DNA of 64,000 nucleotides from Tubulanus polymorphus (taxonomy: Eukaryota; Animalia; Nemertea): positions 8,606,275 through 8,670,274 of the forward strand of contig NC_134032.1 of NCBI RefSeq assembly GCF_964204645.1, in the 5' to 3' direction. A model generated the notes under the pieces. That model searched no databases. It saw only the letters and a list, made by a program, of their open reading frames with translations, and was not told where the DNA came from. Position numbers and translations under genes: made by a program. The first letter of the stretch is position 1. Each line of letters starts with the position of its first letter. This document shows, piece after piece, positions 22,701-50,892 of the stretch.

Positions 22701-23128
22701 TGACGGTTGGTGCGTTGGTATCTTCAGATTTCATCCTCGGTTTTTGACATTCCATCTTATGAGCCCAAGCGCGACCCACAGGTTAAGGTCAATGAATCCA
22801 GAGGATATGCATCGTAAGGACCTAGTCTCAGTTATCTACAAACAATGGCCCATCAATAGGTCGAGCTTTTGAAGATAGTTAGCCACCAGGAACCAGTCAA
22901 TCAAAAGTTCATTAAAGACAACCAGTGGATAGTTGGCGTACACTAGTTACAATCAGTTGCGTAGCAGCGCCGCGGTGCAGAATAGTACGCCGACTCCTCA
23001 TTAAAAATCATTGCAACTACAGTATTCATCCGTTGGGTATTGTTAACCAACCTTTCAGCAACTGACCCAGGAATTTCTATTCTCTAACGATAAATAAACT
23101 TAAAACAATACTGATTTATCATTTTTAC

Positions 23129-23222
23129 CATCATAGTTCTTCGCTACTGTTAATGTGTTCAGCACCGAGATGGCGATCACTGCGACTGACACCAACGTTA
23201 AAAACCTCACGATCGCCGACAT
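23129..23222 (-). other. Orphan signal-peptide leader exon
   Basis: MSAIVRFLTLVSVAVIAISVLNTLTVAKNYD followed by a phase-1 GT donor; paralogous to the leaders at 39652 and 59531; no Ig exon follows it. Confidence 0.75.
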
Positions 23223-23919
23223 ATTTTCTGCTTGTTCGGATTTCGAGTTTTAACATCCGATCGACACGAAATCTGCAAACGATAAACGGATGATTATTTG
23301 GAAAACGGAAGTCAATAGAATTTTTATGGTGATCCGCCAACTTCCGCAAATCAATGAATCATAGCAATTTTTCTCAATTCTATAAAATTCCATGAAATAT
23401 ACAAAAAAACTGCGGCCTACAACTGTGTGCTGGCCAAAAGAGCCCACAGATCACACTACTACCAATCTGACCCTATTTATCAACTGTTTTCTACAACCTT
23501 CCGATTATCTAGTGTGTTTCTCCCTGGGTTATGAAATGTATACCATCATGGACTAATGGTCGTAGATTTTTTTAATCAAACTGAACGAATCATGAATAAA
23601 GTAACGGTAATTTAAGAATTAACTTAATCATACCTACGCTTTGAATGTTTTTTGATGATCGTTGTTAGCTTGTATACGTTAACGAATGGTTCACACGTTC
23701 CTAGGTAAGCGGTGTTTCGCCCGATCGTCCTCAGAAGGAATTACTGCGGTTCGTCTGTTCGCCCGTTTGTCCGAAGATTCAGTTAATTTAGGAAGCTTTA
23801 AAGACGCAAGACAATAGCCGTCTTGATATTCAGTCTATACGTGTATCTACCCTAGACACGTCTACAGAAAAAAACCGGCCCGATCATGTTCAAGATGGCT
23901 GTGCGACGGGGATTCTTGC

Positions 23920-24732: not shown

Positions 24733-25647
24733 TCATACAGAAATATTCACGAATTTCAGTAAAAGATATATGTAGAAATTTACCGCATAGTTACAAACTT
24801 GTAAGTGAACAAATATGTCATATAGAACTTCCCTCTGTTCCGGTGGGATTGGTAACAATGAAGTAATGGCGGATGGGAGTAAGAATATAGCAAATGCGAG
24901 TGAAACTGTTACAAGCATTATTGTTGTACGTTTTGAATTTGTAGTTTTCCGATCTGACGAAACCATTTTTGAACCTCTGAATAGCTGAACTATTATAGCG
25001 GTATTTGATATCACAATGAAGGATAAAGGCAGTATATAACCGTAGATAACAGATACCACAAAGTATGTTATTTGGTCCAATAACTTATAGGAACATGCGA
25101 AAAACTGGTCGTTGAAATGTATCGACAATGCAGGTGTGAAATATATAACAAGTACATTCACTGAAGTGATTAACAGTATAGCAAATCTAGCGAATCCCGG
25201 TGTACATATCAGACGAGATGTGAACGGGAAAAGAACAACTGCCGCGCGTTCTAAAGATATCGCTACTATCAACCACGAACCATTGGCGGCTGCAAGCGCC
25301 ATTATAAATTCATAGATTTGACAACCGATCACTGAATTTATCACATATATTGGGCCAGCGTTGAGATGAAAGAGAGCGAACTGTAAAACAGGCAACAGCG
25401 CCAGGCTTTCACTGTATACAAAATCACAGACTGACAGAACGATCAGATAGTTAGCGTATGATAAACCGCGGAATCTACGACTTATCATTACCAGGAAAGT
25501 AGCTGAATTTCCAAACGCTCCAAACAGGAAGATGATGGGCAGAATGACCAGTGACACGGTACGGCGGATTCCAGACCTGTTCACCACTGACATGAGAACG
25601 ATGTAGCTGTTATACGTTTTGCCGATTTCTATCCGTGTAGAATTCAT
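24733..25647 (-). CDS. Intronless class-A GPCR (FMRFamide-receptor-like/Srw-type), C-terminally frameshifted copy
   Basis: Seven hydrophobic segments; motifs GN, YLIVLSVCD, SWLIVAISLER, NYAVNFYIY. A 7-nt deletion at ~24757 relative to the 41342 copy replaces helix 8. Confidence 0.85.
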   Translation of the reverse strand: MNSTRIEIGKTYNSYIVLMSVVNRSGIRRTVSLVILPIIFLFGAFGNSATFLVMISRRFRGLSYANYLIVLSVCDFVYSESLALLPVLQFALFHLNAGPIYVINSVIGCQIYEFIMALAAANGSWLIVAISLERAAVVLFPFTSRLICTPGFARFAILLITSVNVLVIYFTPALSIHFNDQFFACSYKLLDQITYFVVSVIYGYILPLSFIVISNTAIIVQLFRGSKMVSSDRKTTNSKRTTIMLVTVSLAFAIFLLPSAITSLLPIPPEQREVLYDIFVHLQVCNYAVNFYIYLLLKFVNISV

Positions 25648-26155: not shown

Positions 26156-26640
26156 TTAGAAACCTCACAATCGGCGACTTATTTTCTACTAGTACGGTTT
26201 TCGAGTTTTAACATGCAATCGACAATGAATCTGTACGTGGAATGTGACTTCGTTGACAATATACCTGATAAGTGAGCCAAGATGTTGTTCGATAGTTCGA
26301 GTTAGGAGATAAGGGGCTTAAGATTTTACCGAATCAGGCTGTGAGAATTAATCGCTGGAATTTCCCGTTTGTCGCCAAAAAATAGAGACGAATCACGGCA
26401 ACTTTTAAACAGACACAGACAATAACAGGAAACGAAACGATAAACCGATGATTATTAGAAAAAGACGGAAGACATTTGAATTCTTCTTTTTTACGGTGAT
26501 CATCGAAATTCCGAATCAATGTCATAGGAAATTCTAAGAATTTCCTTTGAATTATACCCACAGCTGTGGATCTGGGATCAGAGTTAACTGATATACCATA
26601 ATCGACGGACAATAAAGATTCCGTACATTATCTTGATAAT
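26156..26640 (-). promoter_or_regulatory. Remnant of the Ig-gene promoter/5'UTR/leader start (ATG changed to AAG), upstream of the GPCR
   Basis: Aligns to 59508-59930 and 39630-39970; leader truncated after SPIVRFL. Second copy at 42856-43340. Confidence 0.65.
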
Positions 26641-28021
26641 GGGATTTCATTCCACCTGGGTTTCTTATACTTTTGTATCGAAGTGGACCACACATTATCA
26701 AGTTTCACTTCTCTATCCTCGGAATCAATTAATTAACATGCGGTAAAGTTGAGGAAAATTTGATCTCAAATTGCAGTTACGCGGAACTATACAAGCAAAA
26801 CGTTGTAGACCCTCACTTGCGACATGTGGAATCCTTCATTGCCACGGCCCTAGTTGATGTCCTTTCCTGTACTTGAGTGACACCTGGTGGATACTCGTGG
26901 AATTCTTTGCCAACAGTTGGCTACTCATTTGCCAAAATTACGTATTCTAGTTGTTCTACTGCAAACTAGCGTAAATCTGTTGTTGTTAGGATTCAGGCTA
27001 GAATACTGCTCTAAAGAAACGATCGTAAGATGAACCGATAAATAGACAACACGATGGCATTTCGATACTTGAATATTACATGATCAATCGAATTAATCAA
27101 ACTTTATTTCATATATTTATTCACTTGGCTATGAATGAGCTATGGTACTCGAGCTAGTATTTGTTGTATTAAAATCTTACGGAAAAATTTAGCATTAAGA
27201 GTCTTAGTTTAAGATTTGTTCATAGATTAGATATTACGGCGTCTAGATAAATTGACAACACAATGATGATAATCAGGTGAGATAATATTGTTTATCTTTT
27301 TTAAATTGCCAGGATATTTTCTGTGTAGACCTTCTGATGTACCTTCCATCATAGAACTAGAATTGAACGGAACGCCGACTCCATGACGTCATTTTATGAA
27401 ATTGCGATTTTCAAAATTTCAGCACCCTCACCGTTAGCCATAAACAATAGATATTCGGTGATAATTCGATATATTTTTCGCGCGAGCAATGATGATACAA
27501 TTTAACCAAATGTTGAACAGTAAAGTTTGGACTAGTTAAAAATAGGTGCCTCTATAGATGAATATCGTTGACAATGAATTATAAAATATGAGCAGAATGA
27601 TATTCACGATTGATAATTTATTTGAGTTATATGTATATCGACTGTTGAATTGAATTGACCGGCGACCAGTCTAGTCCCGCGATATTGATGACGCAGAGCA
27701 CATCCACTCAAAACTTTATTGCTAACGGCGTGGGGCTGTAAAAAACACAAGATTCCATGATAATCCGGAAAGATAAGAATTTTTTAAGTTTTAGCGGGGC
27801 GTGGTAAATTCCTTTAAGGAGTCGGCATTCACATTCGCTTATATTTCTATGCTTCCATTCGTCATTATTGATTGGTGAAGTTAACCGTATTGTTTACTTC
27901 AGGAATGCTGGAAAAAAAATAAAACAGACACTTTTCATTCATCTTTTTTGAAACTATCGACGAAGAAAGCCGCCGGTAGTTACTCTCGGTGTTTAAAGGG
28001 TTAACCAACGTAGACACATAC

Positions 28022-31000
28022 CTGTCTCGTCTTCGAACGCGAGCGTATAGGTGCCGCGTACTTCCTGTACGGGTGTCATAGTCCTAGCGACGCACGTGTA
28101 GTCACCGCGTAGGTCTTCTTCCGTGATGTATTTCCACGAGTTGATATGCAGCGAGTTGTCGGCGTTGTCCTGCCAGATTTGATTCTCGATGTAGTCGATC
28201 GGGCTACCGTTGTACAACCATTCTATCTGCGGAATCGTCGCCGGATCAGACTCCGTTTTGCACGGAAGGATGACGGTATCTGTGAATTCGAACGTCATCA
28301 CCGAAGCGTTCTTGCCGACGCTCGGTTTCGGTTTTCGCATCACGAGCGGCACTGCGGAGACAAGAACGTTCAACTTTTTACCGAATAATTCTAAAGATGA
28401 TTATCATTAGTATTTTTCATAGGTTTGAACATCATAATCATCACCGGTCGACATCGAAAATAAACTGACTCATCGAAGTAACCAAAATGAGATTAAGTTG
28501 TCATCAATAGGCGCTAATCATATATTGATTCTAATGATACTTACGGACAACATTTATATATCCGTTAGCTATGATGCTACCATGGATATTTGAAGCCCGA
28601 CACTGGACGACTCTCATATCGGGAGTGTTCACGCTGCCATCCCCGCCGCGGATCAGGTGACGCAATACGTAAGTATTCGCGGTTACCGTCAATCTGTTAT
28701 CATTCTTCGTATCTGAACAAAAATCATTGGAATTTGTTGATTCAAATATGTTTTCTCGAACTGTCTTTGAATTTGACTCAAATCAGCTCATTTTCGATTA
28801 GCTGACTTGAATAACAATAGGGGCATTTTGTCCAGTGACTTGACTGAAGTTTTCCGGAATTATTGTCACTACCAAAATATCCGTTGAACTAGATTAACTG
28901 ACACACAGTCTTGACCCTTGAGTGAAAATCTCTTCATGTCAAATCTTTCAAATAGGCAGTCAAAATTTAAACCTACTAGATTTTTAAACTCTAGAGACGA
29001 AATTACTAACTAAATTCGCTTGGGTCAAATTTTGGTCGTCCCATAGACCCACAGGTGCCGGTAGTCCATTTTCGAGAGTTAAGTTAGAAGTGATGTAAAC
29101 GCCATTCTGCTTTTATAAGATATAAATCGACAAATTGGAATTGCCAAAACATCAATGAGTATAAAACGTCTTCTTTCAAGTTTTCGAGCCGTGTTTAAGT
29201 TTTGACCCTACACTAAAACCCCATTTAACGATTGTCTCTGCACTTACGGTCAACTGGGACGAGATTTTCGAGCCATTCAGTAGTCGGGGTCGGGTTACCG
29301 GTCGCTTCGCATTCGAATCTAGCCGTGTCACCGATGACGTAAGTAGAATCGACCGGTTTCTTGGTGAACTTCGGTAAAGCTTAAATCAAAATTGTCGGCA
29401 ATTAACAAGGATTTCATCGAGTTTTCCGGAAAATAGTATTATCTTTTTCTTTTACATGAAACTTTTATAGATGGAAACGATTTCTGAAACCGTAATTATC
29501 GGTTTTGATTCGCAGCAAAACAAAAAATAAAGTTTCTATCCGTGATGGAATTCTTCAATCTTAAAGTGGGATTTTCCTCATTATCCATTTGATTGGTAGA
29601 TTTGGTCTGATAACTTCTCATTTCGTGTCCCTCAACAAACCCACTACACCTGCCGGGAGCGAAACATTCTTTGCCAGAACCAAGTGCACATGGAACCAAG
29701 AAGAGGACAACTTTGAATATCGTGACTTCTCGGAGCTCCAAGAGGAAAATAAACAGCTCTTGAAATGGCAATTTAGATATCCTTGGAGTCATCCCTAGAT
29801 AATGTTATGGCTTCAGAAACCATGATTGGGATATTGTTGGAGCCACCCACTTAAGAGAGGTTTAAAAGGCATGATTGTGAGAGTGATGACTGAATTTTTG
29901 ATGATTTGGGCGTCTTCGTAGCCATCCTAATTTCCTTCAAAACTTCACATCAAATTCAAACTGTCATTGTGAAATATCTTTAAGCTTTGAATCATACATT
30001 TTTCATGTTGATTTAGATTATAAAACAAAACTTACTCATGATTTCGACGCGGGTTCTGGACGTTTTACTGCCCATCCAGTTCGACACCGTACACTCGTAC
30101 TCGCCGGCGTAACTCGGGGCAACATTTATCAAATACAAGTGAACGTTGCCGTTCGAATACGAATGATTCGTAGGCATCGGCTTGCCGTCGAGGCGACGCC
30201 ACGAAACGGTAGCGACCGGCCTGTAAAAAAATATGCAAGAATATATACACACCTTACCATCGCGCATCCTCGCTTTCCAGGGTTTGATTACCATCCGCTG
30301 ACGTTCACGCCAAAAACGCTGGCTGCAAACCATTCTTTGATCCATTACGCTGGCCAAGATATCTTTGGCGGACAGGTTGAATGACCGGACTACTAAACTG
30401 AATAGGTTTAAGCACTTACTTGGCGCTTGAAATACAATACAAATCGATCACATCGCGTTCTAACGCGCTTACAACCGGCGGTGGATTCGCAATCAACGCT
30501 GGAGGCTTGTTCGGCACGTTGGGATCTGCAATCGAAAAATATTGATATTTCGAAAGAAATCATTGAGCAAAGTATAAGCAAATTTGGGGGGGGGGGCTGG
30601 GGGTAGTCAACAAATGTCAAACAACGTTAACTTTTCGCAATTTTGAATTTCGGTCGGAACTTCCAATATTTCGAGGAAAAGAAACAAACTTTGAATTCGG
30701 GAAACATCGGAATCAAATACTCTATTCGAGATATTATCATATATTTAGAACAGAATATCGGTCAATATTGGTATGGGATAAACGAAATAAAATTTTCCAT
30801 TTTGACTTACTTGGTTTCACTTTGATGGAAATCGGACTGCCCTGTTTGATAGTACCCTGAGCGGCGTTATTGTACTGACAGACGTATGTCTCATCCGAGT
30901 CCGGTTTGGTCGCGTCGGATGGTAAAATGTGCGAGAAAAACAGGTTACCTACGAACGAAGAGTTTACGCACGCTTTTAGAAAACATGGCCACGTAGATAG

Positions 31001-32506
31001 ATCCTATCAGATCATCGTGAAGTTAAGCCTTCAGACATTTTCAGAAAATATGACTGCCAGTGACATCATTAAATTTACTAGGCATTTTCGAAAAAGATGA
31101 CTGCCTTAGAAATTTCCATATGACACCATAAAAATACACTTTGACACTGCCCCGGAAAAATGGTGACATTAATTCCAAATTCATGGAACAATCTATTCAT
31201 CCTGATATTAAATTTTTTAAGTTAGGTGTGAAAAATTACATATTTTCGAAATCCAATATGATACCGTATTTTATTTACACTGCTCTGATACGCAGTTATG
31301 GGTTTATAAATGAATGGTGTTACATGTATCATCTATCATTATGGTACCAACGTACAAATAGTAGACTCCGCTCTTCTCGGTACCGGTCGACAAGATAACC
31401 GGCTGCGTCGGTGAAATTCCATTCTGATCCCTGTCGTAAAATTCCTAGACCTACCGGTCTCTATGTCGGTATTCGGTTCCAAATAGAACCAAGTTAGGCG
31501 GAGTCTACTGTATATTGTTTCTGCAGATCGAACTATTTTTGAACTCTTACCGTTTGGACCGATCATAACCCTCGAATCGGTGGTGATTGCGCGTACGGTG
31601 CTGGCCTCGACCCTTCCGTACCCTTTGATGATCAGCCACGAGATGATGGCTCGCTTCGGGAACGAGTCCGGAGGGTTGCATTTCAATTCGGTGAACGAGC
31701 CTTCCTGCAAGAGCAACATCGGTTTCACCTTCAAATTCTCCGGGCTGAAGTCACCGGTATCTGAAGGAGAGCACAAAGTGGTCGTTTAAAATTTTCTGCA
31801 GCCCAGACCCAGAAATCGACATGGTTTATCAAAATGTTTATCAAGAAAAGAACAGGAAAAATTAAATGATCCAGTGATCAGTTGTCGTACGGCTGGGGCT
31901 GCTTAAGTTCGGAGATTCTTTTAAATCTAAGAGAACGTAGGGCTTAGTTCGCAAAAGGACTATTTATTCGATAGCCACCAACCGAAGAGTGAAAGGATAG
32001 GGAGAGATGAGAGGCGGAGGAAGTGAGTGTTAACATTTCATCATCGATCTGAATGGCGATTGTAGTTGTAAACTTACATTTCTCATTGACGACCACGTTG
32101 TTCGACGCCGCTTTCCCGAAATCGTTCTCGGCGTAGCACGCGTATTTAAAGTTCTCCGGCGGGGTCTTCGCCGACAACTCGTTGTTTCGACTCGGTCGCA
32201 CCTTCAACTGCGTGGAATCGCGAGTTCCGTCCGGTTGAATCGGGAATTCATAGAATCCTGGGATGTGAGTGACCAGAGAGAACTCGCTGTTACCGGAACT
32301 CATCATCCAGCGGATCCTAAAAGAAAGAACACGACCGTGCGGCCAACTATTGGAAACTCGGTTCAACTGTCGACCCGGCTGGCCAAAGGGTACCGGTACT
32401 TACAGCGGTTTCGGAATGCCGCTGGCTTTGCACGTCAACATGGCGCGTTCGCTCGACGTCACCAGGAAACTTTTTGACACCGAATCGATCGACGGTGGAA
32501 TCCGTA
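28022..32506 (-). CDS. Ig1-Ig5 ectodomain module A (intact; no leader of its own, no TM/tail)
   Basis: Exons 32506-32404, 32316-32078, 31760-31551, 30948-30811, 30525-30420, 30220-30036, 29379-29248, 28712-28545, 28351-28022; all AG/GT and in frame. Read-through of the last donor gives GMCLRWLTL* ending at 27993. Confidence 0.8.
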
Positions 32507-34172
32507 CTGAAAACACAAATGAATGACCAACAACTAGGTTTCGATTGAGCATATGAATTTTTTTAGGGGGGGGGCATCCTGTTTCAAGAAAAATGGCATC
32601 TTTTTACCGTGAAAAGGGAAACTTTCCCATTGAAAGTGTCACAGATCTTAGATATGAAGTACCCGGGAACCTGAATAAATCATCTGAGATTGAATTCATT
32701 TTTATTTTCCTAAAACAGGAAAATCGTATCTGAATTTTGAAAAATCGTGACCAAATATTTTTACACTAACACGAAAGGCAAAAAATAGATATAAATTATC
32801 TCATCGAGTAGATAATTCTTTTTTTTAAGGTTACGAAGTTCACAGATCACGAGTGTTAAAATCTTACGGAAAAATTTAGCATTAAGAGTCTTAGTTTAAG
32901 ATTTGTTCATAGATTAGATATTACGGCGTCTAGATAAATTGACAACACAATGATGATAATCAGGTGAGATAATATTGTTTATCTTTTTTAAATTGCCAGG
33001 ATATTTTCTGTGTAGACCTTCTGATGTACCTTCCATCATAGAACTAGAATTGAACGGAACGCCGACTCCATGACGTCATTTTATGACATTGCGATTTTCA
33101 AAATTTCAGCACCCTCACCGTTAGCCATAAACAATAGATATTCGGTGATAATTCGATATATTTTTCCCGCGAGCATTGATGATACAATTTAACCAAATGT
33201 TGAACAGTAAAGTTTGGACTAGTTAAAAATAGGTGCCTCTATAGATGAATATCGTTGACAATGAATTATAGAATATGAGCAGAATGATAGTTTATTTGAG
33301 TTATATGTATATCGACTGTTGAATTGAATTGACCGGCGACCAGTCTAGTCCCGCGATATTGACGACGCAGTGCACATCCACTCAAAACTTTATTGCTAAC
33401 GGCGTGGGGCTGTAAAAAACACAAGATTCCATGATAAGAAAAGAATTTTCTAAGTTTTAGCGGGGCTTGGTAAATTCCTTTAAGGAGTCGGCATTCACAT
33501 TCGCTTATATTTCTATGCTTCCATTCGTCATTATTGATTGGTGAAGTTAACCGTATTGTTTACTTCAGGAATGCTGGAAAAAAAATAAAACAGACACTTT
33601 TCATTCATCTCGCGGAAGCAACACGTCTTGTTCCGTTCAAGTCAAATACCGTGGATGAAGCGATGATCCACCAGGTGGAAACATTGCGCTGCATTAGGAC
33701 AACAAACGATGTCGGATTTCTTCTCAGATTCGATTCGTAAATAAATTTACCAAACGAATGAACCCAGAAGATCATTTTGAGCTAATCTCTTGCCGCTGAG
33801 AAGAGCCTTGCCTAATTTTGGTATAGGTAATTAAGAATCTAGATGAACGTAGAGAATGATTTATATATTGGATCGAGATGTCCTATTGCAATGCACGCCA
33901 TCTGGTGGGAATGCTTGTGCTACGGGGTCCTCTATCTGAGCATACCAGCAGCAACCCGCACCATATGACGTGACTAAAAGTTCACGTTAATTTTTAACTT
34001 TCTACCGGATTTTCAAATCCCCGAATCCAAATACTACGGCAATACGAGCGTGGTTATAAGATAACAGATTTGTTTTTCTGAAACTATCGACAAAGAAAGC
34101 CGCCGGTGGTCGAAGGGTATCACCTAATAGTTACTCTCGGTGTTTAAAGGGTTAACCAACGTAGACACATAC

Positions 34173-37100
34173 CTGTCTTGTCTTCGAACGCGAGCGTATA
34201 GGTGCAGCGTACTTCATGTACGGGTGTCATAGTCCTCGCGACGCACGTGTAGTCACCGCGTAGGTCTTCTTCCGTGATGTATTTCCACGAGTCGATATGC
34301 AGCGAGTTGTCGGTGTTGTCCTGCCAGATTTGATTCTCGGCGTAGTTGATCGGGCTACCGTTGTACAACCATTCGATCTGCGGAATCGTCGCTGGATCAG
34401 ACTCCGTTTTGCACGGCAGGATGACGGTATCTGTGAATTCGAACGTCATCACCGAAGCGTTCTTGCCGTCGCTCGGTTTCGGTTCTCGCATCACGAGCGG
34501 CACTGCGGAGACAAGAACGAAAAAGCCACGTTCAACTTTTTACCGAATAATTCTAACGATAATTAGATGATTATCATTAGTATTTTTCATAGGTTTGAAC
34601 ATCATAATCATCACCGGTCGACATCGAAAATAAACTGACTCATCGAAGTAACCAAAATGAGATTAAGTTGTCATCAATAGGCGCTAATCATATATTGATT
34701 CTAATGATACTTACGGACAACATTTATATATCCGTTAGCTATGATGCTACCATGAATATTTGAAGCCCGACACTGGACGACTCTCATATCGGGAGTGTTC
34801 ACGCTGCCATCCCCGCCGCGGATCAGGTGACGCAATATGTAAGTATTCGCGGTTACCGTCAATCTGTTATCATTCTTCGTATCTGAACAAAAATCATTGG
34901 AATTTGTTGATTCAAATATGTTTTCTCGAACTGTCTTTGAATTTGACTCAAATCAGCTCATTTTCGATTAGCTGACTTGAATAACAATAGGGGCATTTTG
35001 TCCAGTGACTTGACTGAAGTTTTTCGGAATTATTGTCACTACCAAAATATCCGTTGAACTAGATTAACTGACACACAGTCTTGACCCTTGAGTGAAAATC
35101 TCTTCATGTCAAATCTTTCAAATAGGCAGTCAAAATTTAAACCTACTAGATTTTTAAACTCTAGAGACGAAATTACTAACTAAATTCGCTTGGGTCAAAT
35201 TTTGGTCGTCCCATAGACCCACAGGTGCCGGTAGTCCATTTTCGAGAGTTAAGTTAGAAGTGATGTAAACGCCATTCTGCTTTTATAAGATACAAATCGA
35301 CAAATTGGAATTGCCAACACATCAATGAGTATAAAACGTCTTCTTTCAAGTTTTCGAGCCGTGTTTAAGTTTTGACCCCACACTAAAACCCCATTTAACG
35401 ATTGTCTCTGCACTTACGGTCAACTGGGACGAGATTTTCGAGCCATTCAGTAGTCGGGGTCGGGTTACCGGTCGCTTCGCATTCGAATCTAGCCGTGTCA
35501 CCGATGACGTAAGTAGAATCGACCGGTTTCTTGGTGAACTTCGGTAAAGCTTAAATCAAAATTGTCGGCAATTAACAAGGATTTCATCGAGTTTTCCGGA
35601 AAATAGTATTATCTTTTTCTCTTTTACATGAAACTTTTAGAGATGGAAACGATTTCTGAAACCGTAATTATCGGTTTTGATTCGCAGCAAAACAAAAAAT
35701 AAAGTTTCTATCAGTGATGGAATTCTTCAATCTTAAAGTGGGATTTTCCTCATTATCCATTTGATTGGTAGATTTGGTCTGATTACTTCTCATTTCGTGT
35801 CCCTCAACAAACCCACTACACCTGCCGGGAGCGAAACATTCTTTGCCAGAACCAAGTGCACATGGAACCAAGAAGAGGACAACTTTGAATATCGTGACTT
35901 CTCGGAGCTCCAACAGGAAAATAAACAGCTCTTGAAATGGCAATTTAGATATCCTTGGAGTCATCCCTAGATATTGTTATGGCTTCAGAAACCATGATTG
36001 GGATATTGTTGGAGCCACCCACTTAAGAGAGGTTTAAAAGGCATGATTGTGAGAGTGATGACTGAATTTTTGATGATTTGGGCGTCTTCGTAGCCATCCT
36101 AATTTCCTTCAAAACTTCACATCAAATTCAAACTGTCATTGTGAAATATCTTTAAGCTTTGAATCATACATTTTTCGTGTTGATTTAGATTATAAAACAA
36201 AACTTACTCACGATTTCGACGCGGGTTCTGGACGTTTTACTGCCCATCCAGTTCGACACCGTACACTCGTACTCGCCGGTGTAACTCGGTGCGACGTTTT
36301 TCAAATACAAGTGAACGTTGCCGTTCGAATACGAATGATTCGATGGCATCGGCTTGCCGTCGAGGCGACGCCACGAAACGGTAGCGACCGGCCTGTAAAA
36401 AAATATGCAAGAATATATACACACCTCACCACTGACGTTCACGCCAAAAACCCTGGCCGCAAACCATTCATTGATCCATTACGCTGGCCAAGATATCTTT
36501 GGCGGACAGGTTGAAACACCGGACTACTAAACTGAATAGGTTTAAGCATCTTACTTGGCGCTTGAAATACAATACAAATCGATCACATCGCGTTCTAACG
36601 CGCTTACAACCGGCGGTGGATTCGCAATCAACGCTGGAGGCTTGTTCAGCACGTTGGGATCTGCAATCGAAAAATATTGATACTTCGAAAGAAATCATTG
36701 AGCAAAGTATAAGCAAATTGGAGGGGGGGGGGGGGTAGTCAACAAATGTCAAACAACGTTAACTTTTCGCAATTTTGAATTTCGGTCGGAACTTCCAATA
36801 TTTCGAGGAAAAGAAACAAACTTTGAATTCGGGGAACATCGGAATCAAATACTCTATTCGAGATATTGTCATATATTTAGAACAGAATATCGGTCAATAT
36901 TGGTATGGAATAAACGAAATAAAATTTTCCATTTTGACTTACTTGGTTTCACTTTGATGGAAGTCGGACTGCCCTGTTTGATAACACCCTGAGCGGGGTT
37001 ATTGTACTGACAGACGTACGACTCATCCGGTTTGGTCGCGTCGGATGGTAAACTGTGCGAGAAAAACAGGTTTCCTACGAACGAAGAGTTTACGCACGCT

Positions 37101-38641
37101 TTTAGAAAACATGGCCACGTAGATAGATCCTATCAGATCATCGTGAAGTTAAGCCTTCAGACATTTTCAGAAAATATGACTGCCAGTGACATCATTAAAT
37201 TTACTAGGCATTTTCGAAAAAGATGACTGCCTTAGAAATTTCCATATGACACCATAAAAATACACTTTGACACTGCCCCGGAAAAATGGTGACATTAATT
37301 CCAAATTCATGGAACAATCTATTCATCCTGATATTAAATTTTTTAAGTTAGGTGTGAAAAATTACATATTTTCGAAATCCAATATGATACCGTATTTTAT
37401 TTACACTGCTCTGATACGCAGTTATGGGTTTATAAATGAATGGTGTTACATGTATCATCTATCATTATGGTACCAACGTACAAATAGTAGACTCCGCTCT
37501 TCTCGGTACCGGTCGACAAGATAACCGGCTGCGTCGGTGAAATTCCATTCTGATCCCTGTCGTAAAATTCCTAGACCTACCGGTCTCTATGTCGGTATTC
37601 GGTTCCAAATAGAACCAAGTTAGGCGGAGTCTACTGTATATTGTTTCTGCAGATCGAACTATTTTTGAACTCTTACCGTTTGGACCGATCATAACCCTCG
37701 AATCGGTGGTGATTGCGCGTACGGTGCTGGCCTCGACCCTTCCGTACCCTTTGATGATCAGCCACGAGATGATGGCTCGCTTCGGGAACGAGTCCGGAGG
37801 GTTGCATTTCAATTCGGTGGTCAAGCCTTCCTGTACCTGCAACGTCGGTTTCACCTTCAAATTCTCCCAGCTAAAGTCACCGGTATCTGAAGGAGAGCAC
37901 AAAGTGGTCGTTTAAAATTTTCTGCAGCCCAGACCCAGAAATCGACATGGTTTATCAAAATGTTAATCAAGAAAAGAACAGGAAAAATTAAATGATCCAG
38001 TGATCAGTTGTCGTACGGCTGGGGCTGCTTAAGTTCGGAGATTCTTTTAAATCTAAGAGAACGTAGGGCTTAGTTCGCAAAAGGACTATTTATTCGATAG
38101 CCACCAACCGAAGAGTGAAAGGATAGGGAGAGATGAGAGGCGGAGGAAGTGAGTGTTAACATTTCATCATCGATCTGAATGGCGATTGTAGTTGTAAACT
38201 TACATTTCTCATTGACGACCACGTTGTTCGACGCCGCTTTCCCGAAATCGTTCTCGGCGTAGCACGCGTATTTAATGTTCTCCGGCGGGGTCTTCGCCGA
38301 CAACTCGTTGTTTCGACTCGGTCGCACCTTCAACTGCGTGGAATCGCGAGTTCCGTCCGGTTTAATCGGAAATTCATAGAATCCTGGGATGTGAGTGACC
38401 GGAGAGAACTCGCTGTTACCGGAACTCATCATCCAGCGGATCCTAAAAGAAAGAACACGACCGTGCGGCCAACTATTGGAAACTCGGTTCAACTGTCGAC
38501 CCGGCTGGCCAAAGGGTACCGGTACTTACATCGGTTTCGGAATGCCGCTGGCTTTGCACGTCAACTTGGCGCGTTCGCTCGACGACACCAGGAAACTTTT
38601 TGACACCGAATCGATCGACGGTGGAATTAGGGGGGGGCATC
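34173..38641 (-). CDS. Ig1-Ig5 ectodomain module B (intact if the cryptic acceptor at 38642-38644 is used)
   Basis: Exons 38641-38530, 38442-38204, 37886-37677, 37074-36943, 36660-36555, 36392-36208, 35549-35418, 34882-34715, 34502-34173; no stops or frameshifts seen. Confidence 0.72.
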
Positions 38642-39558
38642 CTGTTTCAAGAAAAATGGCATCTTTTTACCGTGAAAAGGGAAACTTTCCCATTGAAAGC
38701 GTCACAGATCTTAGATATGAAGTGCCCGGGAACCTGAATAAATCATCTGAGATTGAATTCATTTTCATTTTCCCAAAACAGCAAAATCGTATCTGAATTT
38801 TGAAAAATCGTGACCAAATTTTTTAAACTAACACGAAAGGCAAAAAAATATATATAAATTATCTCATCGAGTAGATAATTCTTTTTTTTAAGGTTACGAA
38901 GTTCACAGATCACGAGTGTTTAAAAAATAAATAAATAACGATCTGGAACGGCCTAAATTGGAACGAACTGGAAATGGATTGGACTTTTTGCTGGTGTGAA
39001 CGCTTGGTCCGTACTAAATTTGAACGGGCCAAATTTAGACCGTTCTAAAATACGTATTGTGAATTCACCAGTTGACAAGGTAAAGAGTAAAGATTAGTTA
39101 TTGTCGATATTTTGACTAAATGGACTACTGAACTGAGAAGTACGGAACTGGTTCTTCAATTCTTCAATTGCTGCCATAAAGTTGGTTCGAAAAACGGTAT
39201 CAAAGAACTCGAACCCCTCGGGACTCTGTGACCGAAATTCCCCAATCATGTACTTTGATTCAAACAAAAAATGTTGTTAATTCGACCGACGATCGCTCAT
39301 CTATATATCTGTAGTACTATTTCTCCCGGTGCGGTGGGCTCGTTAAGGGACTCCAAACAAAGCAAATCAAACGAAATCTACCAATCAAATAAATAATCGG
39401 ATCAAACCCTGTTTTAAGATCATCAGTTAAAACAATCTATAGTAATCCTATCAGATTAAAAGAATCTACAATGTAATTTGAACCGGCGTCTTTGGAACTG
39501 GGTGCGGCCGTTGGCAGGGAACTAGATCGAGAAGGCACGGGAGACTTTAAAGACCTAC

Positions 39559-41341: not shown

Positions 41342-42292
41342 TCATTTGAGGGCATTTCTACAGCGGATTTTCATACAGAAATATTCACGAATTTCTCGTC
41401 CCAGTAAAAGATATATGTAGAAATTTACCGCATAGTTACAAACTTGTAAGTGAACAAATATGTCATATAGAACTTCCCTCTGTTCCGGTGGGATTGGTAA
41501 CAATGAAGTAATGGCGGATGGGAGTAAGAATATAGCAAATGCGAGTGAAACTGTTACAAGCATTATTGTTGTACGTTTTGAATTTGTAGTTTTCCGATCT
41601 GACGAAACCATTTTTGAACCTCTGAATAGCTGAACTATTATAGCGGTATTTGATATCACAATGAAGGATAAAGGCAGTATATAACCGTAGATAACAGATA
41701 CCACAAAATATGTTATTTGGTCCAATAACTTATAGGAACATGCGAAAAACTGGTCGTTGAAATGTATCGACAATGCAGGTGTGAAATATATAACAAGTAC
41801 ATTCACTGAAGTGATTATCAGTATAGCAAATCTAGCGAATCCCGGTGTACATATTAGACGAGATGTGAACGGGAAGAGAACAACTGCCGCGCGTTCTAAA
41901 GATATCGCTACTATCAACCACGAACCATTGGCGGCTGCAAGCGCCATTATAAATTCATAGATTTGACAACCGATCACTGAATTTATCACATATATTGGGC
42001 CAGTGCTGAGATGAAAGAGAGCGAACTGTAAAACAGGCAACAGCGCCAGGCTTTCACTGTATACAAAATCACAGACTGACAGAACGATCAGATAGTTAGC
42101 GTACGATAAACCGCGGAATCTACGACTTATCATTACCAGGAAAGTAGCTGAATTTCCAAACGCTCCAAACAGGAAGATGATGGGCAGAATGACCAGTGAC
42201 ACGGTACGGCGGATTCCAGACCTGTTCACCACTGACATGAGAACGATGTAGCTGTTATACGTTTTGCCGATTTCTATCCGTGTAGAATTCAT
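41342..42292 (-). CDS. Intronless class-A GPCR (FMRFamide-receptor-like/Srw-type), 316 aa, intact copy
   Basis: 7TM ORF with N-terminal NST sequon, ER motif at the TM3 end, NFYIY in TM7, and helix 8 GREIREYFC. Confidence 0.92.
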   Translation of the reverse strand: MNSTRIEIGKTYNSYIVLMSVVNRSGIRRTVSLVILPIIFLFGAFGNSATFLVMISRRFRGLSYANYLIVLSVCDFVYSESLALLPVLQFALFHLSTGPIYVINSVIGCQIYEFIMALAAANGSWLIVAISLERAAVVLFPFTSRLICTPGFARFAILIITSVNVLVIYFTPALSIHFNDQFFACSYKLLDQITYFVVSVIYGYILPLSFIVISNTAIIVQLFRGSKMVSSDRKTTNSKRTTIMLVTVSLAFAIFLLPSAITSLLPIPPEQREVLYDIFVHLQVCNYAVNFYIYLLLGREIREYFCMKIRCRNALK

Positions 42293-44720
42293 GATTCATA
42301 TGAATATCAAATGAGAATACATCGACTGTCCGAGAGAGACGGACTATAGGAGGGCGCTCTGCTGGCTGTTTGAGTGTGTACGGACTGTCTGAGAATGACA
42401 TTCTGAGATCGAGTGTGTTGACATTCTGAGAGTGTATTGACATTCTGAGAGTGACTGTTTTAGAATGCGCTGCCTGTCCCGAGAATGTACTGTAGCTGTG
42501 TCCTGTCGGGTATCAGAAAATCAATTTAACATATGTATGAAGATATCATTAAAGTCTTTATATTACAGCTACAGCTCATTTGTAAGATTTATTGCTGCGA
42601 ATAGAATATCAGTCCTCAGAAATCTGACACTATTCACTCGGATTTAATGAAAGTTTAGTTGTATCTTATAAAAATGGAATATATTCGTGACAATAATCGT
42701 GACGATAAATTCGTGAATATTTCTGTAAATTTCCGTATTCATATTACAGTGGTTCATTTCTAATGATTTATGTCAGCAGTCAAATATCAACATCAACAGT
42801 TGCCAGTATCCAGTAACACAGTTTTGTGGAAACATTATGCCGCTTAATTCTGAGATTAGAAACCTCACAATCGGCGACTTATTTTCTACTAGTACGGTTT
42901 TCGAGTTTTAACATGCAATCGACAATGAATCTGTACGTGGAATGTGACTTCGTTGACAATATACCTGATAAGTGAGCCAAGATGTTGTTCGATAGTTCGA
43001 GTTAGGAGATAAGGGGCTTAAGATTTTACCGAATCAGGCTGTGCGAATTAATCGCTGGAATTTCCCGTTTGTCGCCAAAAAATAGAGACGAATCACGGCA
43101 ACTTTTAAACAGACACAGACAATAACAGGAACGAAACGATAAACCGATGATTATTAGAAAAAACGGAAGACATTTGAATTCACCTTTTTTACGGTGATCA
43201 TCGAAATTCCGAATCAATGTCATAGGAAATTCTAAGAATTTCCTTTGAATTATACCCACAGCTGTGGATCTGGGATCAGAGTTAACTGATATACCATAAT
43301 CGACGGACAATAAAGATTCCGTACATTATCTTGATAATGGGATTTCATTCCACCTGGGTTTCTTATACTTTTGTATCGAAGTGGACCACACATTATCAAG
43401 TTTCACTTCTCTATCCTCGGAATCAATTAATTAACATGCGGTAAAGTTGAGGAAAATTTGATCTCAAATTGCAGTTACGCGGAACTATACAAGCAAAACG
43501 TTGTAGACCCTCACTTGCGACATGTGGAATCCTTCATTGCCACGGCCCTAGTTGATGTCCTCTCCTGTACTTGAGTGACACCTGATGGATCCTCGTGGAA
43601 TTCTTTGCCAACAGTGGGCTACTCATTTGCCAAAATTACGTATTCTAGTTGTTCTACTGCAAACTAGCGTAAATCTGTTGTTGTTAGGATTCAGGCTAGA
43701 ATACTGCTCTAAAGAAACGATCGTAAGATGAACCGATAAATAGACAACACGATGGCATTTCGATACTTGAATATTACATGATCAATCGAATTAATCAAAC
43801 TTTATTTCATATATTTATTCACTTGGCTATGAATGAGCTATGATACTCGAGCTAGTATTTGTTGTATTAAAATCTTACGGAAAAATTTAGCATTAAGAGT
43901 CTTAGTTTAAGATTTGTTCATAGATTAGATATTACGGCGTCTAGATAAATTGACAACACAATGATGATAATCAGGTGAGATAATATTGTTTATCTTTTTT
44001 AAATTGCCAGGATATTTTCTGTGTAGACCTTCTGATGTACCTTCCATCATAGAACTAGAATTGAACGGAACGCCGACTCCATGACGTCATTTTATGAAAT
44101 TGCGATTTTCAAAATTTCAGCACCCTCACCGTTAGCCATAAACAATAGATTATTCGGTGATAATTCGATATATTTTTCCCGCGAGCATTGATGATACAAT
44201 TTAACCAAATGTTGAACAGTAAAGTTTGGACTAGTTAAAAATATGTGCCTCTATAGATGAATATCGTTGACAATGAATTATAAAATATGAGCAGAATGAT
44301 ATTCACGATTGATAATTTATTTGAGTTATATGTATATCGACTGTTGAATTGAATTGACCGGCGACCAGTCTAGTCCCGCGATATTGATGACGCAGAGCAC
44401 ATCCACTCAAAACTTTATTGCTAACGGCGTGGGGCTGTAAAAAACACAAGATTCCATGATAATCCGGAAAGATAAGAATTTTCTAAGTTTTAGCGGGGCG
44501 TGGTAAATTCCTTTAAGGAGTCGGCATCCACATTCGCTTATATTTCTATGCTTCCATTCGTCATTATTGATTGGTGAAGTTAACCGTATTGTTTACTTCA
44601 GGAATGCTGGAAAAAAAATAAAACAGACACTTTTCATTCATCTTTTTTGAAACTATCGACGAAGAAAGCCGCCGGTAGTTACTCTCGGTGTTTAAAGGGT
44701 TAACCAACGTAGACACATAC

Positions 44721-47700
44721 CTGTCTTGTCTTCGAACGCGAGCGTATAGGTGCCGCGTACTTCCTGTACGGGTGTCATAGTCCTAGCGACGCACGTGTAG
44801 TCACCGCGTAGGTCTTCTTCCGTGATGTATTTCCACGAGTTGATATGCAGCGAGTTGTCGGCGTTGTCCTGCCAGATTTGATTCTCGATGTAGTCGATCG
44901 GGCTACCGTTGTACAACCATTCTATCTGCGGAATCGTCGCCGGATCAGACTCCGTTTTGCACGGAAGGATGACGGTATCTGTGAATTCGAACGTCATCAC
45001 CGAAGCGTTCTTGCCGTTCTTGCTGTCGCTCGGTTTCGGTTCTCGCATGATGAGCGGCACTGCGGAGACAATAACGAAAAAGCCACGTTCAACTTTTACC
45101 AAATAATTCTAACGATAATGAGATGATTATCATTAGTATTTTTCATAGGTTTGAACATCATAATCATCACCGGTCGACATCGAAAATAAACTGACTCATC
45201 GAAGTAACCAAAATGAGATTAAGTTGCCATCAATAGGCGCTAATCATATATTGATTCTAATGATACTTACGGACAACATTTATATATCCGTTAGCTATGA
45301 TGCTACCATGAATATTTGAAGCCCGACACTGGACGACTCTCATATCTGGAGTGTTCACGCTGCCATCCCCGCCGCGGATCAGGTGACGCAATATGTAAGT
45401 ATTCGCGGTTACCGTCAATCTGTTATCATTCTTCGTATCTGAACAAAAATCATTGGAATTTGTTGATTCAAATATGTTTTCTCGAACTGTCTTTGAATTT
45501 GACTCAAATCAGCTCATTTTCGATTAGCTGACTTGAATAACAATAGGGGCATTTTGTCCAGTGACTTGACTGAAGTTTTCTGGAATTATTGACACTATAA
45601 AAATATCCGTTGAACTAGATTAACTGACACACAGTCTTGACCCTTGAGTCAAAATCTCTTCATGTCAAATCTTTCAAATAGGCAGTCAAAATTTAAACCT
45701 ACTAGATTTTTAAACTCTAGAGACGAAATTACTAACTAGATTCGCTTGAGTCAAATTCTGGTCGTCCCATAGACCCACTGGTGCCGGTAGTCCATTTTCG
45801 AGAGTTAAGTTAGAAGTGATGTAAACGCCATTCTGCTTTTATAAGATATAAATCGACAAATTGGAATTGCCAACACATCAATGAGTATAAAACGTCTCCT
45901 TTCAAGTTTTCGAGCCGTGTTTAAGTTTTGACCCCACACTAAAACCCCATTTAACGATTGTCTCTGCACTTACGGTCAACTGGGACGAGATTTTCGAGCC
46001 ATTCAGTAGTCGGGGTCGGGTTACCGGTCGCTTCGCATTCGAATCTAGCCGTGTCACCGATGACGTAAGTAGAATCGACCGGTTTCTTGGTGAACTTCGG
46101 TAAAGCTTAAATCAAAATTGTCGGCAATTAACAAGGATTTCATCGAGTTTTCCGGAAAATAGTATTATCTTTTTCTCTTTTACATGAAACTTTTAGAGAT
46201 GGGAACGATTTCTGAAACCGTAATTATCGGTTTTGATTCGCAGCAAAACAAAAAATAAAAGCTTCTATCCGTGATGGAATTCTTCAATCTTAAAGTGGGA
46301 TTTTCCTCATTATCCATTTGATTGGTAGATTTGGTCTGATTACTTCTCATTTCGTGTCCCTCAACAAACCCACTACACCTGCCGGGAGCGAAACATTCTT
46401 TGCCAGAACCAAGTGCACATGGAACCAAGGAGAGGACAACTTTGAATATCGTGACTTCTCAGAGCTCCAACAGGAAAATAAACAGCTCTTGAAATGGCAA
46501 TTTAGATATCCTTGGAGTCATCCCTAGATAATGTTATGGCTTCAGAAACCATGATTGGGATATTGTTGGAGCCACCCACTTAAGAGAGGTTTAAAAGGCA
46601 TGATTGTGAGAGTGATGACTGAATTTTTGATGATTTGGGCGTCTTTGTAGCCATCCTAATTTCCTTCAAAACTTCACATCAAATTCAAACTGTCATTGTG
46701 AAATATCATTAAGCTTTGAATCATACATTTTTCATGTTGATTTAGATTATAAAACAAAACTTACTGATGATTTCGACGCGGGTTCTGGACGTTTTACTGC
46801 CCATCCAGTTCGACACCGTACACTCGTACTCGCCGGCGTAACTCGGGGCAAAATTTATCAAATACAAGTGAACGTTGCCGTTCGAATACGAACGATTCGT
46901 AGGCATCGTCTTGCCGTCGAGGCGACGCCACGAAACGGTAGCGACCGGCCTGTAAAAAAATATGCAAGAATATATACACACCTTACCATCGCGCATCCTC
47001 GCTTTCCAGGGTTTGATTACCATCCGCTGACGTTCACGCCAAAAACCCTGGCCGCAAACCAGGTATCTTGGCCATTACGCTGGCCAAGATACCTTTGGCG
47101 GACAGGTTGAAACACCGGACTACTAAACTGAATAGGTTTAAGCATCTTACTTGGTGCTTGAAATACAATACAAATCGATCACATCGCGTTCTAACGCGCT
47201 TACAACCGGCGGTGGATTCGCAATCAACGCTGGAGGCTTGTTCGGCACGTTGGGATCTGCAATCGAAAAATATTGATATTTCGAAAGAAATCATTGAGCA
47301 AAGTATAAGCAAATTGGGGGGTAGTCAACAAATGACAAACAACGTTAACTTTTCGCAATTTTGAATTTCGGTCGGAACTTCCAATATTTCGAGGAAAAGA
47401 AACAAACTTTGAATTCGGGAAACATCGGAATCAAATACTCTATTCGAGATATTATCATATATTTAGAACAGAATATCTGTCAATATTGGTATGGAATAAA
47501 CGAAATGAAATTTTCCATTTTGACTTACTTGGTTTCACTTTGATGGAAATCGGACTGCCCTGTTTGATAACACCCTGAGCGGCGTTATTGTACTGACAGA
47601 CGTACGACTCATCCGGTTTGGTCGCGTCGGATGGTAAAATGTGCGAGAAAAACAGGTTACCTACGAACGAAGAGTTTACGCACGCTTTTAGAAAACATGG

Positions 47701-50700
47701 TCACGTAGATAGATCCTATCAGATCATCGTGAAGTTAAGCCTTCAGACATTTTCAGAAAATATGACTGCCAGTGACATCATTAAATTTACTAGGCATTTT
47801 CGAAAAAGATGACTGCCTTAGACATTTCCATATGACACCATAAAAATACACTTTGACACTGCCCCGGAAAAATGGCTGACATTAATTCCAAATTCATGGA
47901 ACAATCTATACATCCTGATATTGAATTTTTTAAGTTAGCTGTGAAAAATTACATATTTTCGAAATCCAATATGATACCGTATTTTATTTACACTGCTCTG
48001 ATACGCAGTTATGGGTTTATAAATGAATGGTGTTACATGTATCATCTATCATTATGGTACCAACGTACAAATAGTAGACTCCGCTCTTCTCGGTACCGGT
48101 CGACGAGATAACCGGCTGCGTCGGTGAAATTCCATTCTGATCCCTGTCGTAAAATTCCTAGACCTACCGGTCTCTATGTCGGTATTCGGTTCCAAGTAGA
48201 ACCAAGTTAGGTGGAGTCTACTGTATATTGTTTCTGCAGATCGAACTATTTTTGAACTCTTACCGTTTGGACCGATCATAACCCTCGTTAGGTGGTGATC
48301 GCGCGTACGGTGCTGTCGTCGACCGTTCCGTACCCTTTGATGATCAACCACGAAGTGATGGCTCGCTTCGGGAACGAGTCCGGAGGGTTGCATTTCAACT
48401 CGGTGAACGAGCCTTCCTGCAAGAGCAACATCGGTTTCACCTTCTTATTCTCCGGGCTGAAGTCACCGGTATCTTAAGGAGAGCACAAAGTTGTCGTTTA
48501 AAATTTTCTGCAGCCCAGACCCAGAAATCGACATGGTTTATCAAAATGTTTATCAAGAAAAGAACAGGAAAATGATCCAGTGATCAGTTGTCGTACGGCC
48601 GGGGCTGCTTAAGTTCGGAGATTCTTTTAAATCTAAGAGAGCGTAGGGCTTAGTTCGCAAAAGGACTATTTATTCGATAGCCACCAACCGAAGAGTGAAA
48701 GGATAGGGAGAGATGAGAGGCGGAGGAAGTGAGTGTTTGACATTTTATCATCGATCTGAATGGCGATTGTAGTTGTAAACTTACATTTCTCATCGACGAC
48801 CACGTTGTTTGACGCCGCTTTCCCGAAATCGTTCTCGGCGTAGCACGCGTATTTAACGTTCTCCGGTGGATTCTTCGCGGCCAACTCGTTGTTGCGACTC
48901 GGTCGCACCTTCAACTGCGTGCGATCGCGCGTTCCGTCCGGTTTAATCGGGAACTCGTAGACTCCAGGGATGTGAGTGATCTGAGTGAAATTGCCGTCAC
49001 CGTAACTGACCATCCATCGGATCCTAAACGAAAAAGATAATGCGAATACGATGACCAGCTAATTCTAAGCACATAGAGGTCACCCTCAAGGCGGCATAAA
49101 TGGGAGAGAGCCTCATTGACCATAAAGAGATGAACTTATCCTTTTGCAAGTATGAAATATATTTCGATGACTCATGACTTCTCTAGGACATTTCAGACTC
49201 GTGACCTCTTCTAGCATGTGGATTCATTTTAGTTATGCCATCATCAGATACCAGGTGGCACATACGTAGTATTGGAAGACGCAAGATGTTTTGCGGGTCA
49301 ATTTTGGTCCTGGTTCATTGGATTTAACATGAATTTCCTCTTTGATGATGATTTCTTATTCAATACATTTATGATTATGATGTTATTGTTTGTTCTTTGG
49401 AGTCGAAGATGACAATAACTTCATTTCCAGGTCATGTGGGTTCTCGGGTGAATGATGAGGCCAAGTTTGGCTCTTAAGCAAGTTGAAAATTGTGTGCTAT
49501 ACAGAAGCTGGGTCGGGTGTAGCCTTTCCGAGAGTACGTTTCTGTATTGGCTCATCAGATCACCTGTTTTCGGTGCTCGTTGGCCCTTGTTGGATCGTGC
49601 TTCTGAAGCTAGCTCTGTCAAGGCAGGGCTATCCCAGCTTTTGGCATTGATAGCAAACGTAACATTTTTCGGCTGTCCTTGTAGCGATCCGTTTGCCCAC
49701 CTGGTCATTGGACATTTTGCCAGAGGCAAGTTTACCAAATAGGAACTGTTTTGAGATGCGGACCATCTGACTTGTGCAATCTGAATCTAGGTATAGGTAC
49801 TTTGGAGGCCTGCTGTGATGTGGAAATCAGTATTGAGGATTCTATCTTGCCATCTTATTTGAAGGATCCTGCGAAGACATCTCATGTGGAAGTGGTTTAG
49901 CTGATTTGCAGGTCTAATATCGACAGTCCAGGTCTCGCAGGCCTAGCCGTGATGCGAGGACGATGGCACGGTATACTGAGTAAGTTCTTGGTCATGGTTG
50001 TTATCCTTCTGCTGTCTCCCAGACGCATGTTTAAGTCTACATAAAGCAGAGCTGGCAGCGTGTTCACTAGGTAGACTTATAAGTGGCCAACTCCAACCAG
50101 GTTTATCCCATTTAATCTGAATTGCAGGCTTGGTGTAAAGTTTCTCGGATGCGGGTTGACAAAGTAATTTGTCTTTGGGATGGACATATAGCGAGACCGA
50201 ACTTATCGCAGGCTGAAGAAAGGCGAGCCATGTCACGCTGCAAACTGCGTTAAGTGATGGTATACAATGCGGTATCGTCGACGAAGAAGATATTCCAGAG
50301 TTTCTTTTAACTCTATATATGATTCGTAAGTTGAACAGCCCTAAATCAGTTTTTGAATTGACCTTTATACCCTAGAGAGTCGCAAAATGCACAACAGAGC
50401 ATTGTAGTGGCCAGAACACCCCCTCTACGTCCTACATTTTCCGTAAGCTGGTTTAACCTCTATATCTTGTACAGGATGTTGTTGAAATAGCTATTTTATA
50501 TATCAAAGATGACCACCAGTCAGCCATCTTGAAAGGTTTTTTCGGTGATAAAGCTATTTCATCAGGGCTTTCCTGGAAGGTAGAAACTCTCAAATCAATA
50601 GGATTCTTCCCAACATAATGTCATAAATGTCAAAGGAATCTTAGGTGGGTCGCGCTACCCGCGGCGTTGCACTATGACAAATATTTTCTGGAGCTGTTCA

Positions 50701-50892
50701 AAATCGCTGATTTTTTAATGAGGCCTTGAAAACACATAACTTATAGGTAAGATACCGTCAACGTAGTAGTAACAGGTGGTGGGCTACCTACCTGGGTTTT
50801 GGGGAACCGCTTGCTTTGCACCTTAACGTGGCACGATACCTCGACGATCAGACAATTCCCTGACACCAAATCGATTGATGGTGGGATTCGCA
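44721..50892 (-). pseudogene. Ig1-Ig5 module C (frameshifted)
   Basis: Exons 50892-50792 (101 nt, -2), 49023-48785, 48472-48264 (209 nt, -1), 47660-47529, 47256-47151, 46949-46765, 46105-45974, 45438-45271, 45059-44721. Confidence 0.85.
49370..50460 (-). mobile_element. Decayed RTE-like LINE fragment in the first intron of module C
   Basis: The - strand reads CETWTV...LNHFHMRCLRRILQIRWQDRI, typical of the region downstream of RT in RTE elements; multiple frame breaks. Confidence 0.75.

Follow-up and report, generated by a model that had tools for sequence, protein, structure and literature searches.

The immunoglobulin gene cluster

The window analysed here is a 64,000-nucleotide (nt) stretch of Tubulanus polymorphus contig NC_134032.1 (assembly GCF_964204645.1, forward-strand positions 8,606,275 to 8,670,274). 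It holds a cluster of duplicated immunoglobulin (Ig) domain genes in which short segments of single exons match a diverged paralogue on the opposite strand instead of the sister copies, a mosaic probably produced by gene conversion. Self-comparison of the window, together with genome searches, gave six full copies of one nine-exon unit (exons e0 to e8), named P, Q, A, B, C, and D, and a truncated copy, F, outside the window. The first-pass annotation of this DNA, made from the sequence alone, had counted five paralogues; this number was too low, as Q and F fall outside the window. Searches of the 268-Mb assembly with P e2, P e5, and the 5′ part of B e2 gave no donor candidate beyond the six copies.

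Gene P, the putative donor, occupied 5225–11376 on the + strand, with open frames and AG..GT borders at every exon. Its exons were e0 at approximately 5225–5326 (placed by homology), e1 at 6215–6453, e2 at 7150–7359, e3 at 7750–7887, e4 at 8204–8309, e5 at 8674–8858, e6 at 9386–9517, e7 at 9965–10129, and e8 at 11047–11376. The genome search placed gene Q 46 kb upstream on the same strand, outside the window (34.5–39.9 kb upstream of the window start). The other four units were on the − strand. Alignment and the exon table placed unit A at 28022–32501 (e0 at 32403–32501 down to e8 at 28022–28351), free of stops and frameshifts, and unit B at 34173–38627 (e0 at 38529–38627 down to e8 at 34173–34502). 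Unit C was aligned at 44721–49037 and extended to 50890 with a frameshifted e0 at 50791–50890. Its e2 lacked 1 nt (at P 7334), it had many private changes, and its close similarity to A (about 97–98%) stopped inside e1, at 49033. By these sequence features C is a pseudogene-like, decayed copy. Unit D (51089–56366), the most diverged copy, was taken as the outgroup. It had its own leader exon and an 11-nt, frame-shifting deletion in e1, and the GT donor after e8 was missing, resulting in read-through into a stop. Exon borders were AG..GT throughout the copies, except for alignment slips at e7.

Each unit encoded five Ig domains, formed by e0+e1, e2+e3, e4+e5, e6+e7, and e8. Domain and structure searches were made exon by exon; pooling of exon columns served for counts alone. 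Pfam I-set or Ig_3 matches were found on e5, e6, and e8. The I-set (PF07679) scores of e5 (31.1 bits) and e6 (30.3 bits) were above the gathering score (cut-off 23.7). In neurofascin and contactins (PDB matches), e5 corresponded to Ig3 (E 5e-11) and e6 to Ig4 (E 1e-10), and the best match of e8 was neurofascin Ig1. Exons e1 and e2, searched singly, gave no clear match. A word search with the e8 peptide returned no homologue candidates in the allowed length range, which says nothing on longer relatives, and the protein atlas search gave generic Ig clusters only. The cluster is tentatively assigned to L1/contactin/hemolin-like genes of the immunoglobulin superfamily (IgSF). The likeness to Ig1–Ig4 of L1CAM, neurofascin, contactin, and hemolin lies in the I-set Ig domains, each split over two exons. 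In contrast with those proteins, fibronectin-III or membrane exons were not found adjoining the units, and the unit here has a fifth Ig domain and is repeated.

Self-comparison showed A and B lying head-to-tail (27166–32861 and 32853–38925). A signal-peptide leader exon was found upstream of B as an open reading frame (ORF) with its ATG at 39652, and the phase 1 donor of B e8 is compatible with the phase 1 acceptor of A e0. Because of the tandem order, the upstream leader, and the matching phases, leader-B-A probably forms one gene for a secreted protein of ten Ig domains, in which A would be the second five-Ig half; the B–A join itself is predicted from the sequence. B was transcribed and spliced, as RNA contigs of two sequencing runs (X2 and X5) joined e5–e4–e3–e2 at exactly the predicted borders. 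Loose ends of RNA contigs also indicated e1>e2 and e5>e6 joins in B, and leader-B-A was abundant in the RNA contigs of one RNA data set.

Three exon patches shared with gene P

The first-pass annotation had described three exon patches in which one of A, B, and C departs from the other two and agrees with gene P. Exact matching, a six-way alignment of P, Q, A, B, C, and D, and a site table recovered all three exactly as described, so that the mosaic is a direct observation. The patches grouped the three copies incongruently, as AC|B in e2, BC|A in e3, and AC|B in e5, and the introns bordering these exons were identical or almost so in A and B.

The e2 patch occupied B 37820–37844 (−), equivalent to P 7192–7216. 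Eight sites in it were equal to P and Q, and A and C shared the other state. The patch encodes TLQVQEGLTT in B, compared with MLLLQEGSFT in A and C. The 30-mer quoted for it occurred exactly twice, at 7191–7220 (+) and 37816–37845 (−). The largest possible tract was B 37748–37867. Three B-private changes (37868, 37869, and 37873) abutted the patch, and the B-private motif adjoining it had no other occurrence in the window.

The e3 patch was located in A, at 30852–30903 (−), equivalent to P 7795–7846. It comprised a 6-nt indel and P/Q-type states at P 7809, 7811, 7845, and 7846; B and C shared the 6-nt deletion and the other states. The largest possible tract was A 30803–30928. Divergence from P in this exon was 1.4% for A and 7.6% for B.

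The e5 patch was again in B, at 36280–36344 (−), equivalent to P 8722–8786, with P states at 8723, 8766, 8770, 8773, 8776, and 8786, where A and C shared the other state. Three of these six sites were synonymous. The patch included the P-only state at 8786, where Q carries another base, and at P 8722 the reference sequence of B was private. The largest possible tract was B 36217–36395. The 24-mer quoted for this patch was exact at 8765–8788 (+) and 36278–36301 (−), and was otherwise found only in D, with three mismatches. B differed from P by 2.2% in this exon, compared with 5.4% between P and Q.

Runs of sites matching the diverged paralogue, with flanks matching the sister copy, were thus present. 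Silent sites and the indel had moved together with replacement sites (three of six synonymous in e5, the 6-nt indel in e3).

Exon and intron divergence

The introns of A and B differed by 0.84%, and those of A–C and B–C by about 2%. Compared with P, five of the seven introns of A gave no significant alignment, although the overall synonymous divergence (dS) between P and A was only 0.22. This agrees with the first-pass description of near-identical A, B, and C introns that are strongly diverged from those of P.

Exons differed more than introns between A and B, with 48 differences in 1499 exonic nt (3.2%) and 23 in 2749 intronic nt (0.84%) (p = 2.6e-8). In the 5′ half (e1–e3), this contrast was 23/587 in exons versus 1/919 in introns (p = 4.5e-9), and the 602-nt intron beside e2 was identical between A and B. 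The excess of exon over intron divergence was thus observed directly. P and Q showed the normal, opposite pattern, with 3.5% in exons and 7.0% in introns. The ratio of nonsynonymous to synonymous divergence (dN/dS) for A–B was 0.71.

Of 33 derived A/B differences in e1–e7, 19 were equal to the P/Q state, giving a binomial p of 2e-15; the count is a hand tally from the site tables, with polarity given by C and chance set generously at about 6%. The mosaic was also significant in triplet permutation tests on exon sites, both for B as a mosaic of A and P (p = 4e-5) and for A as a mosaic of B and P (p = 5e-4).

The exons fell into two groups by their similarity to P. The proportion of synonymous differences between P and A was 0.16 in e1, 0.07 in e2, 0.03 in e3, and 0.10 in e5, compared with 0.26–0.32 in e4, e6, e7, and e8 (0.29–0.32 in e4, e6, and e7). 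Runs of perfect identity with P reached 54–72 nt in e1, e2, e3, and e5, and 29–41 nt in the other exons (35–41 nt in e4, e6, and e7). Differences between A and B numbered 4 in e1, 11 in e2, 8 in e3, and 8 in e5, versus 1 in e4, 0 in e6, and 2 in e7. The exons close to P were therefore the exons in which A, B, and C differed, as continuing homology-dependent exchange with P/Q predicts. Low exon dS beside saturated introns in the P–A comparison is also suggestive of an older layer of exchange.

Two further exchanges can be read from the alignments. Local trees joined A with B in the 5′ half, as ((A,B),C), and A with C over e8 and the 3′ flank, as ((A,C),B); because of this switch, exchange certainly occurred among A, B, and C as well. 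P and Q were themselves mosaic: between P 6840 and about 8785 their identity, with introns counted, was about 99%, and it fell to 85–97% from the 3′ part of e5 onward. This alignment pattern implies a recent long-tract exchange between both + genes.

Reads, RNA contigs, and the assembly

Reads and contigs of four runs (X1, X2, X5, and X8) were aligned to B 36150–37950. X2 and X5 were evidently RNA; X5 came from a separate 2014 study and X2 from the likely source study. Two X5 contigs (37673–37819 and 37790–37886) showed 0 differences from B. They spanned the whole e2 patch, the three B-private sites, the e1 junction, and the A/B/C/D-type site 37885. A DNA unitig of X1 (37838–37899), also with 0 differences, linked e2 patch sites, private sites, and A/B/C-type intron. 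Beside the e5 patch, an X2 RNA contig carried the B-private variant 36344. The presence of the mosaic in RNA and in other samples was thus directly observed. Read depth over e5 was non-confirmatory, as P-derived reads contaminate this region and loose ends run into P introns. B also lacks 38 nt of the e4–e5 intron (at 36431) that are present in A (30260–30297) and C. This gap lies about 40 nt upstream of the exon holding the e5 patch, and X1 and X8 reads over B 36431 showed the 38-nt form, derived from A and C.

These data bear on whether the mosaic was made by the assembly, either as a chimeric consensus of paralogues or with A and B as two haplotypes of one unit placed in tandem. A and B are 99–100% identical over long intron stretches, and the reference differs from other samples at some B-private sites (e.g., 37073 and 37518), both of which would fit such an error. 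However, the X5 contigs from an independent study reproduced the e2 patch with its private sites and e1 junction, the X1 unitig joined the patch to its private sites and to A/B/C-type intron, and P and B are 30 kb apart on opposite strands. The raw reads of X8 had a depth of about 18x in the shared introns, compared with about 6–7x per single copy; A and B are not collapsed alleles, because this depth is close to three copies. An assembly chimera was accordingly rejected for the e2 patch on the X5 contig, the X1 unitig, and the read depth. Chimeric assembly of haplotypes, which the first-pass annotation had raised against its own proposal, is therefore excluded at e2 (X5 and X1) and only weakened at e5, by the X2 contig; we consider an assembly artefact very unlikely overall.

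X8 reads nearly vanished over the B e2 patch (about 1.7x, compared with about 6–7x per copy), and the B-specific unitig of X1 had under half the depth of its neighbours. These drops in depth weakly suggest polymorphism of the patch.

Polarity and probable direction of transfer

Polarity was judged against paralogue D, which in e3 and e5 differed most from the rest (by 15–19% from every other copy). At 7811, 7845, and 7846 in e3, B, C, and D agreed, and only A carried the P/Q states together with the 6 nt. At 8770, 8776, and 8786 (and 8722) in e5, A, C, and D agreed, and only B carried the P states. The patch states were derived relative to D in e3 and e5, and not in e2. Retained ancestral states with crossover among A, B, and C only, the other case raised against conversion by the first-pass annotation, therefore fail for e3 and e5. 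Its proposal of gene conversion or recombination is strengthened by the derived P-type states of these two exons and becomes less certain for e2, where the state may be ancestral.

Parsimony argues that the direction was most likely from P/Q into A and from P into B, because one transfer explains each patch. The reverse direction is disfavoured, because a very young copy would have had to gain several derived changes inside a stretch of about 60 nt. CpG hypermutability was considered as a source of parallel changes at 7811, 8770, and 8786 and was ruled out, since CpG is not depleted (observed/expected 1.24 in the window and 1.6 in P exons).

Explanation of the mosaic and its rivals

Short-tract interlocus gene conversion from P/Q into A and B is the probable explanation of the mosaic, with mechanism and direction both inferred from the patterns above. 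A, B, and C are young copies whose exons, not introns, still share perfect-identity runs of 54–72 nt with P and Q, which lie 20–75 kb from them in inverted orientation. Ectopic (interlocus) conversion in the germline would have carried short, exon-confined tracts of P/Q-type sequence into single copies. One tract of 52–126 nt would have entered A e3 and one of 64–179 nt B e5, and possibly one of 25–120 nt entered B e2.

Several observations weigh against this explanation. Within the A e3 tract, P 7838 keeps the A/B/C/D state and is not P-type. At six of the eight e2 sites, D has the same state as B, and 7163T is likewise common to both; hence B may keep the ancestral state there, and the cluster of eight changes in A and C would then be derived. 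D is a paralogue and not a true outgroup species, and the read check was confined to B (36150–37950). By hand tally, 11 A–B exon differences in e1–e3 match no paralogue, versus 1 in introns (p = 2e-4), and the codons at P 6255–6257 and 6381–6383 carry three to five different residues among the copies. Conversion from P/Q alone thus leaves part of the exon excess unaccounted for. The rest may reflect selection, patchy mismatch repair, donor alleles missing from the sample, or islands that A–B homogenisation spared.

The shared e2 states, the unmatched exon differences, and the hypervariable codons would also fit a history in which old exon segments escaped the homogenisation of A, B, and C and were kept by selection for differing Ig surfaces. 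Exchange would then have run only among A, B, and C, where the local tree shift makes it certain, and P would be similar merely by keeping the ancestral state of the family. We regard this as unlikely. Judged against D, the states that e3 and e5 have in common with P/Q are derived, a single event restored in A the very 6 nt seen in P/Q, and B is closer to P in e5 than P is to its own young duplicate Q. Parallel changes are improbable without CpG depletion, and this history would require many separate intron-only tracts. The A–B dN/dS and some hypervariable codons could instead be taken as signs that single copies came to resemble P through independent, convergent substitutions driven by positive selection. 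This is hardly credible, as it would need recurrent identical silent changes; half of the e5 sites are synonymous, the 6-nt indel matches exactly, and the changes form contiguous runs.

A bolder possibility is programmed somatic conversion, which would diversify the expressed gene inside single animals, as happens with chicken antibody genes. It has no direct support, though one RNA data set is rich in transcripts of the gene, and the decayed copies C and D adjoin it. The patches are present in a germline assembly and recur unchanged in other samples, and such a process is extremely improbable here. Somewhat less remote, but still improbable, is a recurrent, exon-limited copying from the inverted paralogues that keeps the two five-Ig repeats of a highly expressed, secreted ten-Ig protein different and makes it vary from one animal to another, with some patches still segregating. 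The drop of X8 to 1.7x, the X1 unitig at under half depth, and the hypervariable codons are hints of it. If true, it would amount to a germline, or conceivably somatic, system of templated diversification in a ribbon worm. Compared with these alternatives, ordinary gene conversion between duplicated genes accounts for the patches by a known mechanism, of which this cluster is a new example.

Other features of the window

A 9-kb duplication comprises A and C together with their 3′ flanks, and it carries an intronless rhodopsin-type G protein-coupled receptor (GPCR) gene. The two GPCR ORFs were located at 24736–25647 and 41345–42292 (−), with Pfam 7tm_1 matches (E about 2e-15). Since they lie in the duplicated 3′ flanks, the duplication moved the Ig unit and the GPCR gene together. 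Leader/promoter remnants of the B and D genes were seen downstream of A and C, at 26156–26527, 42856–43225, and 23126–23367; the first two have lost the start codon. These remnants are traces of the duplication history of the cluster.

A second copy of the half-Ig1 exon e0 was observed about 50–75 nt after the first. In P (5378–5458, +) it contains a stop, and in Q, 42.0–42.1 kb upstream of the window start, it is intact. Such an exon might serve as a mutually exclusive half-domain alternative of the Dscam type, or it might be a duplicate in decay. Upstream of P e0, a perfect 549-bp direct repeat (2849–3397 and 4508–5056, +) could represent mobile-element ends or an assembly duplication.

Two features lay outside the Ig cluster. 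A long tandem array (462–1273; 10-bp period, strong G-over-C skew) overlapped an ORF that gave spurious pentapeptide and lamprin Pfam matches. A 515-aa open frame at 61610–63154 (−) contained a MatE (MATE transporter) domain (E 1.5e-22).

Comparison with known systems and significance

Interlocus gene conversion is known from the globin, RHD/RHCE, CYP21, and MHC/KIR genes. The present case resembles such systems in tract lengths of tens to about 200 nt, mosaic divergence, and incongruent local trees, and in the restriction of exchange to places where identity runs persist, which here are the exons. There is no mechanistic difference; here, however, the donor is inverted relative to the recipients at a distance of 20–30 kb, and the recipients seem to be two repeated halves within a single gene. 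Conversion between paralogues is also the subject of reports on newt sodium-channel genes (PMC8476164) and on HMA4 tandem paralogues (bioRxiv 10.1101/2025.10.29.685298).

Another case of young duplicates with greater divergence in exons than in introns is that of the human red and green opsin genes, in which the closer likeness of the introns has been read as selection preserving exon differences against homogenisation. In the ribbon worm cluster, unlike the opsins, about half of the exon differences were copied from a third, older paralogue, if the conversion reading is right.

Among diversified invertebrate IgSF immune genes, the snail FREPs (PMC7588048) and the duplicated half-Ig exons of Dscam (PMC3236188) share with this cluster half-domain Ig exons and tandem duplication, and gene conversion is discussed as a source of variety. 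In contrast, the present genes are without a fibrinogen domain, a large alternative-exon array, or any sign of an immune role or somatic change.

The cluster calls for caution with gene trees and with dating by dS within it. For the finding to carry greater weight, the exchange would have to turn out to be recurrent and polymorphic and to be linked with an immune or recognition role. It provides a clean, well-polarised case of what is probably exon-confined gene conversion in a phylum with very little molecular-evolution work, and it shows a route by which young duplicates may end up differing more in their exons than in their introns.

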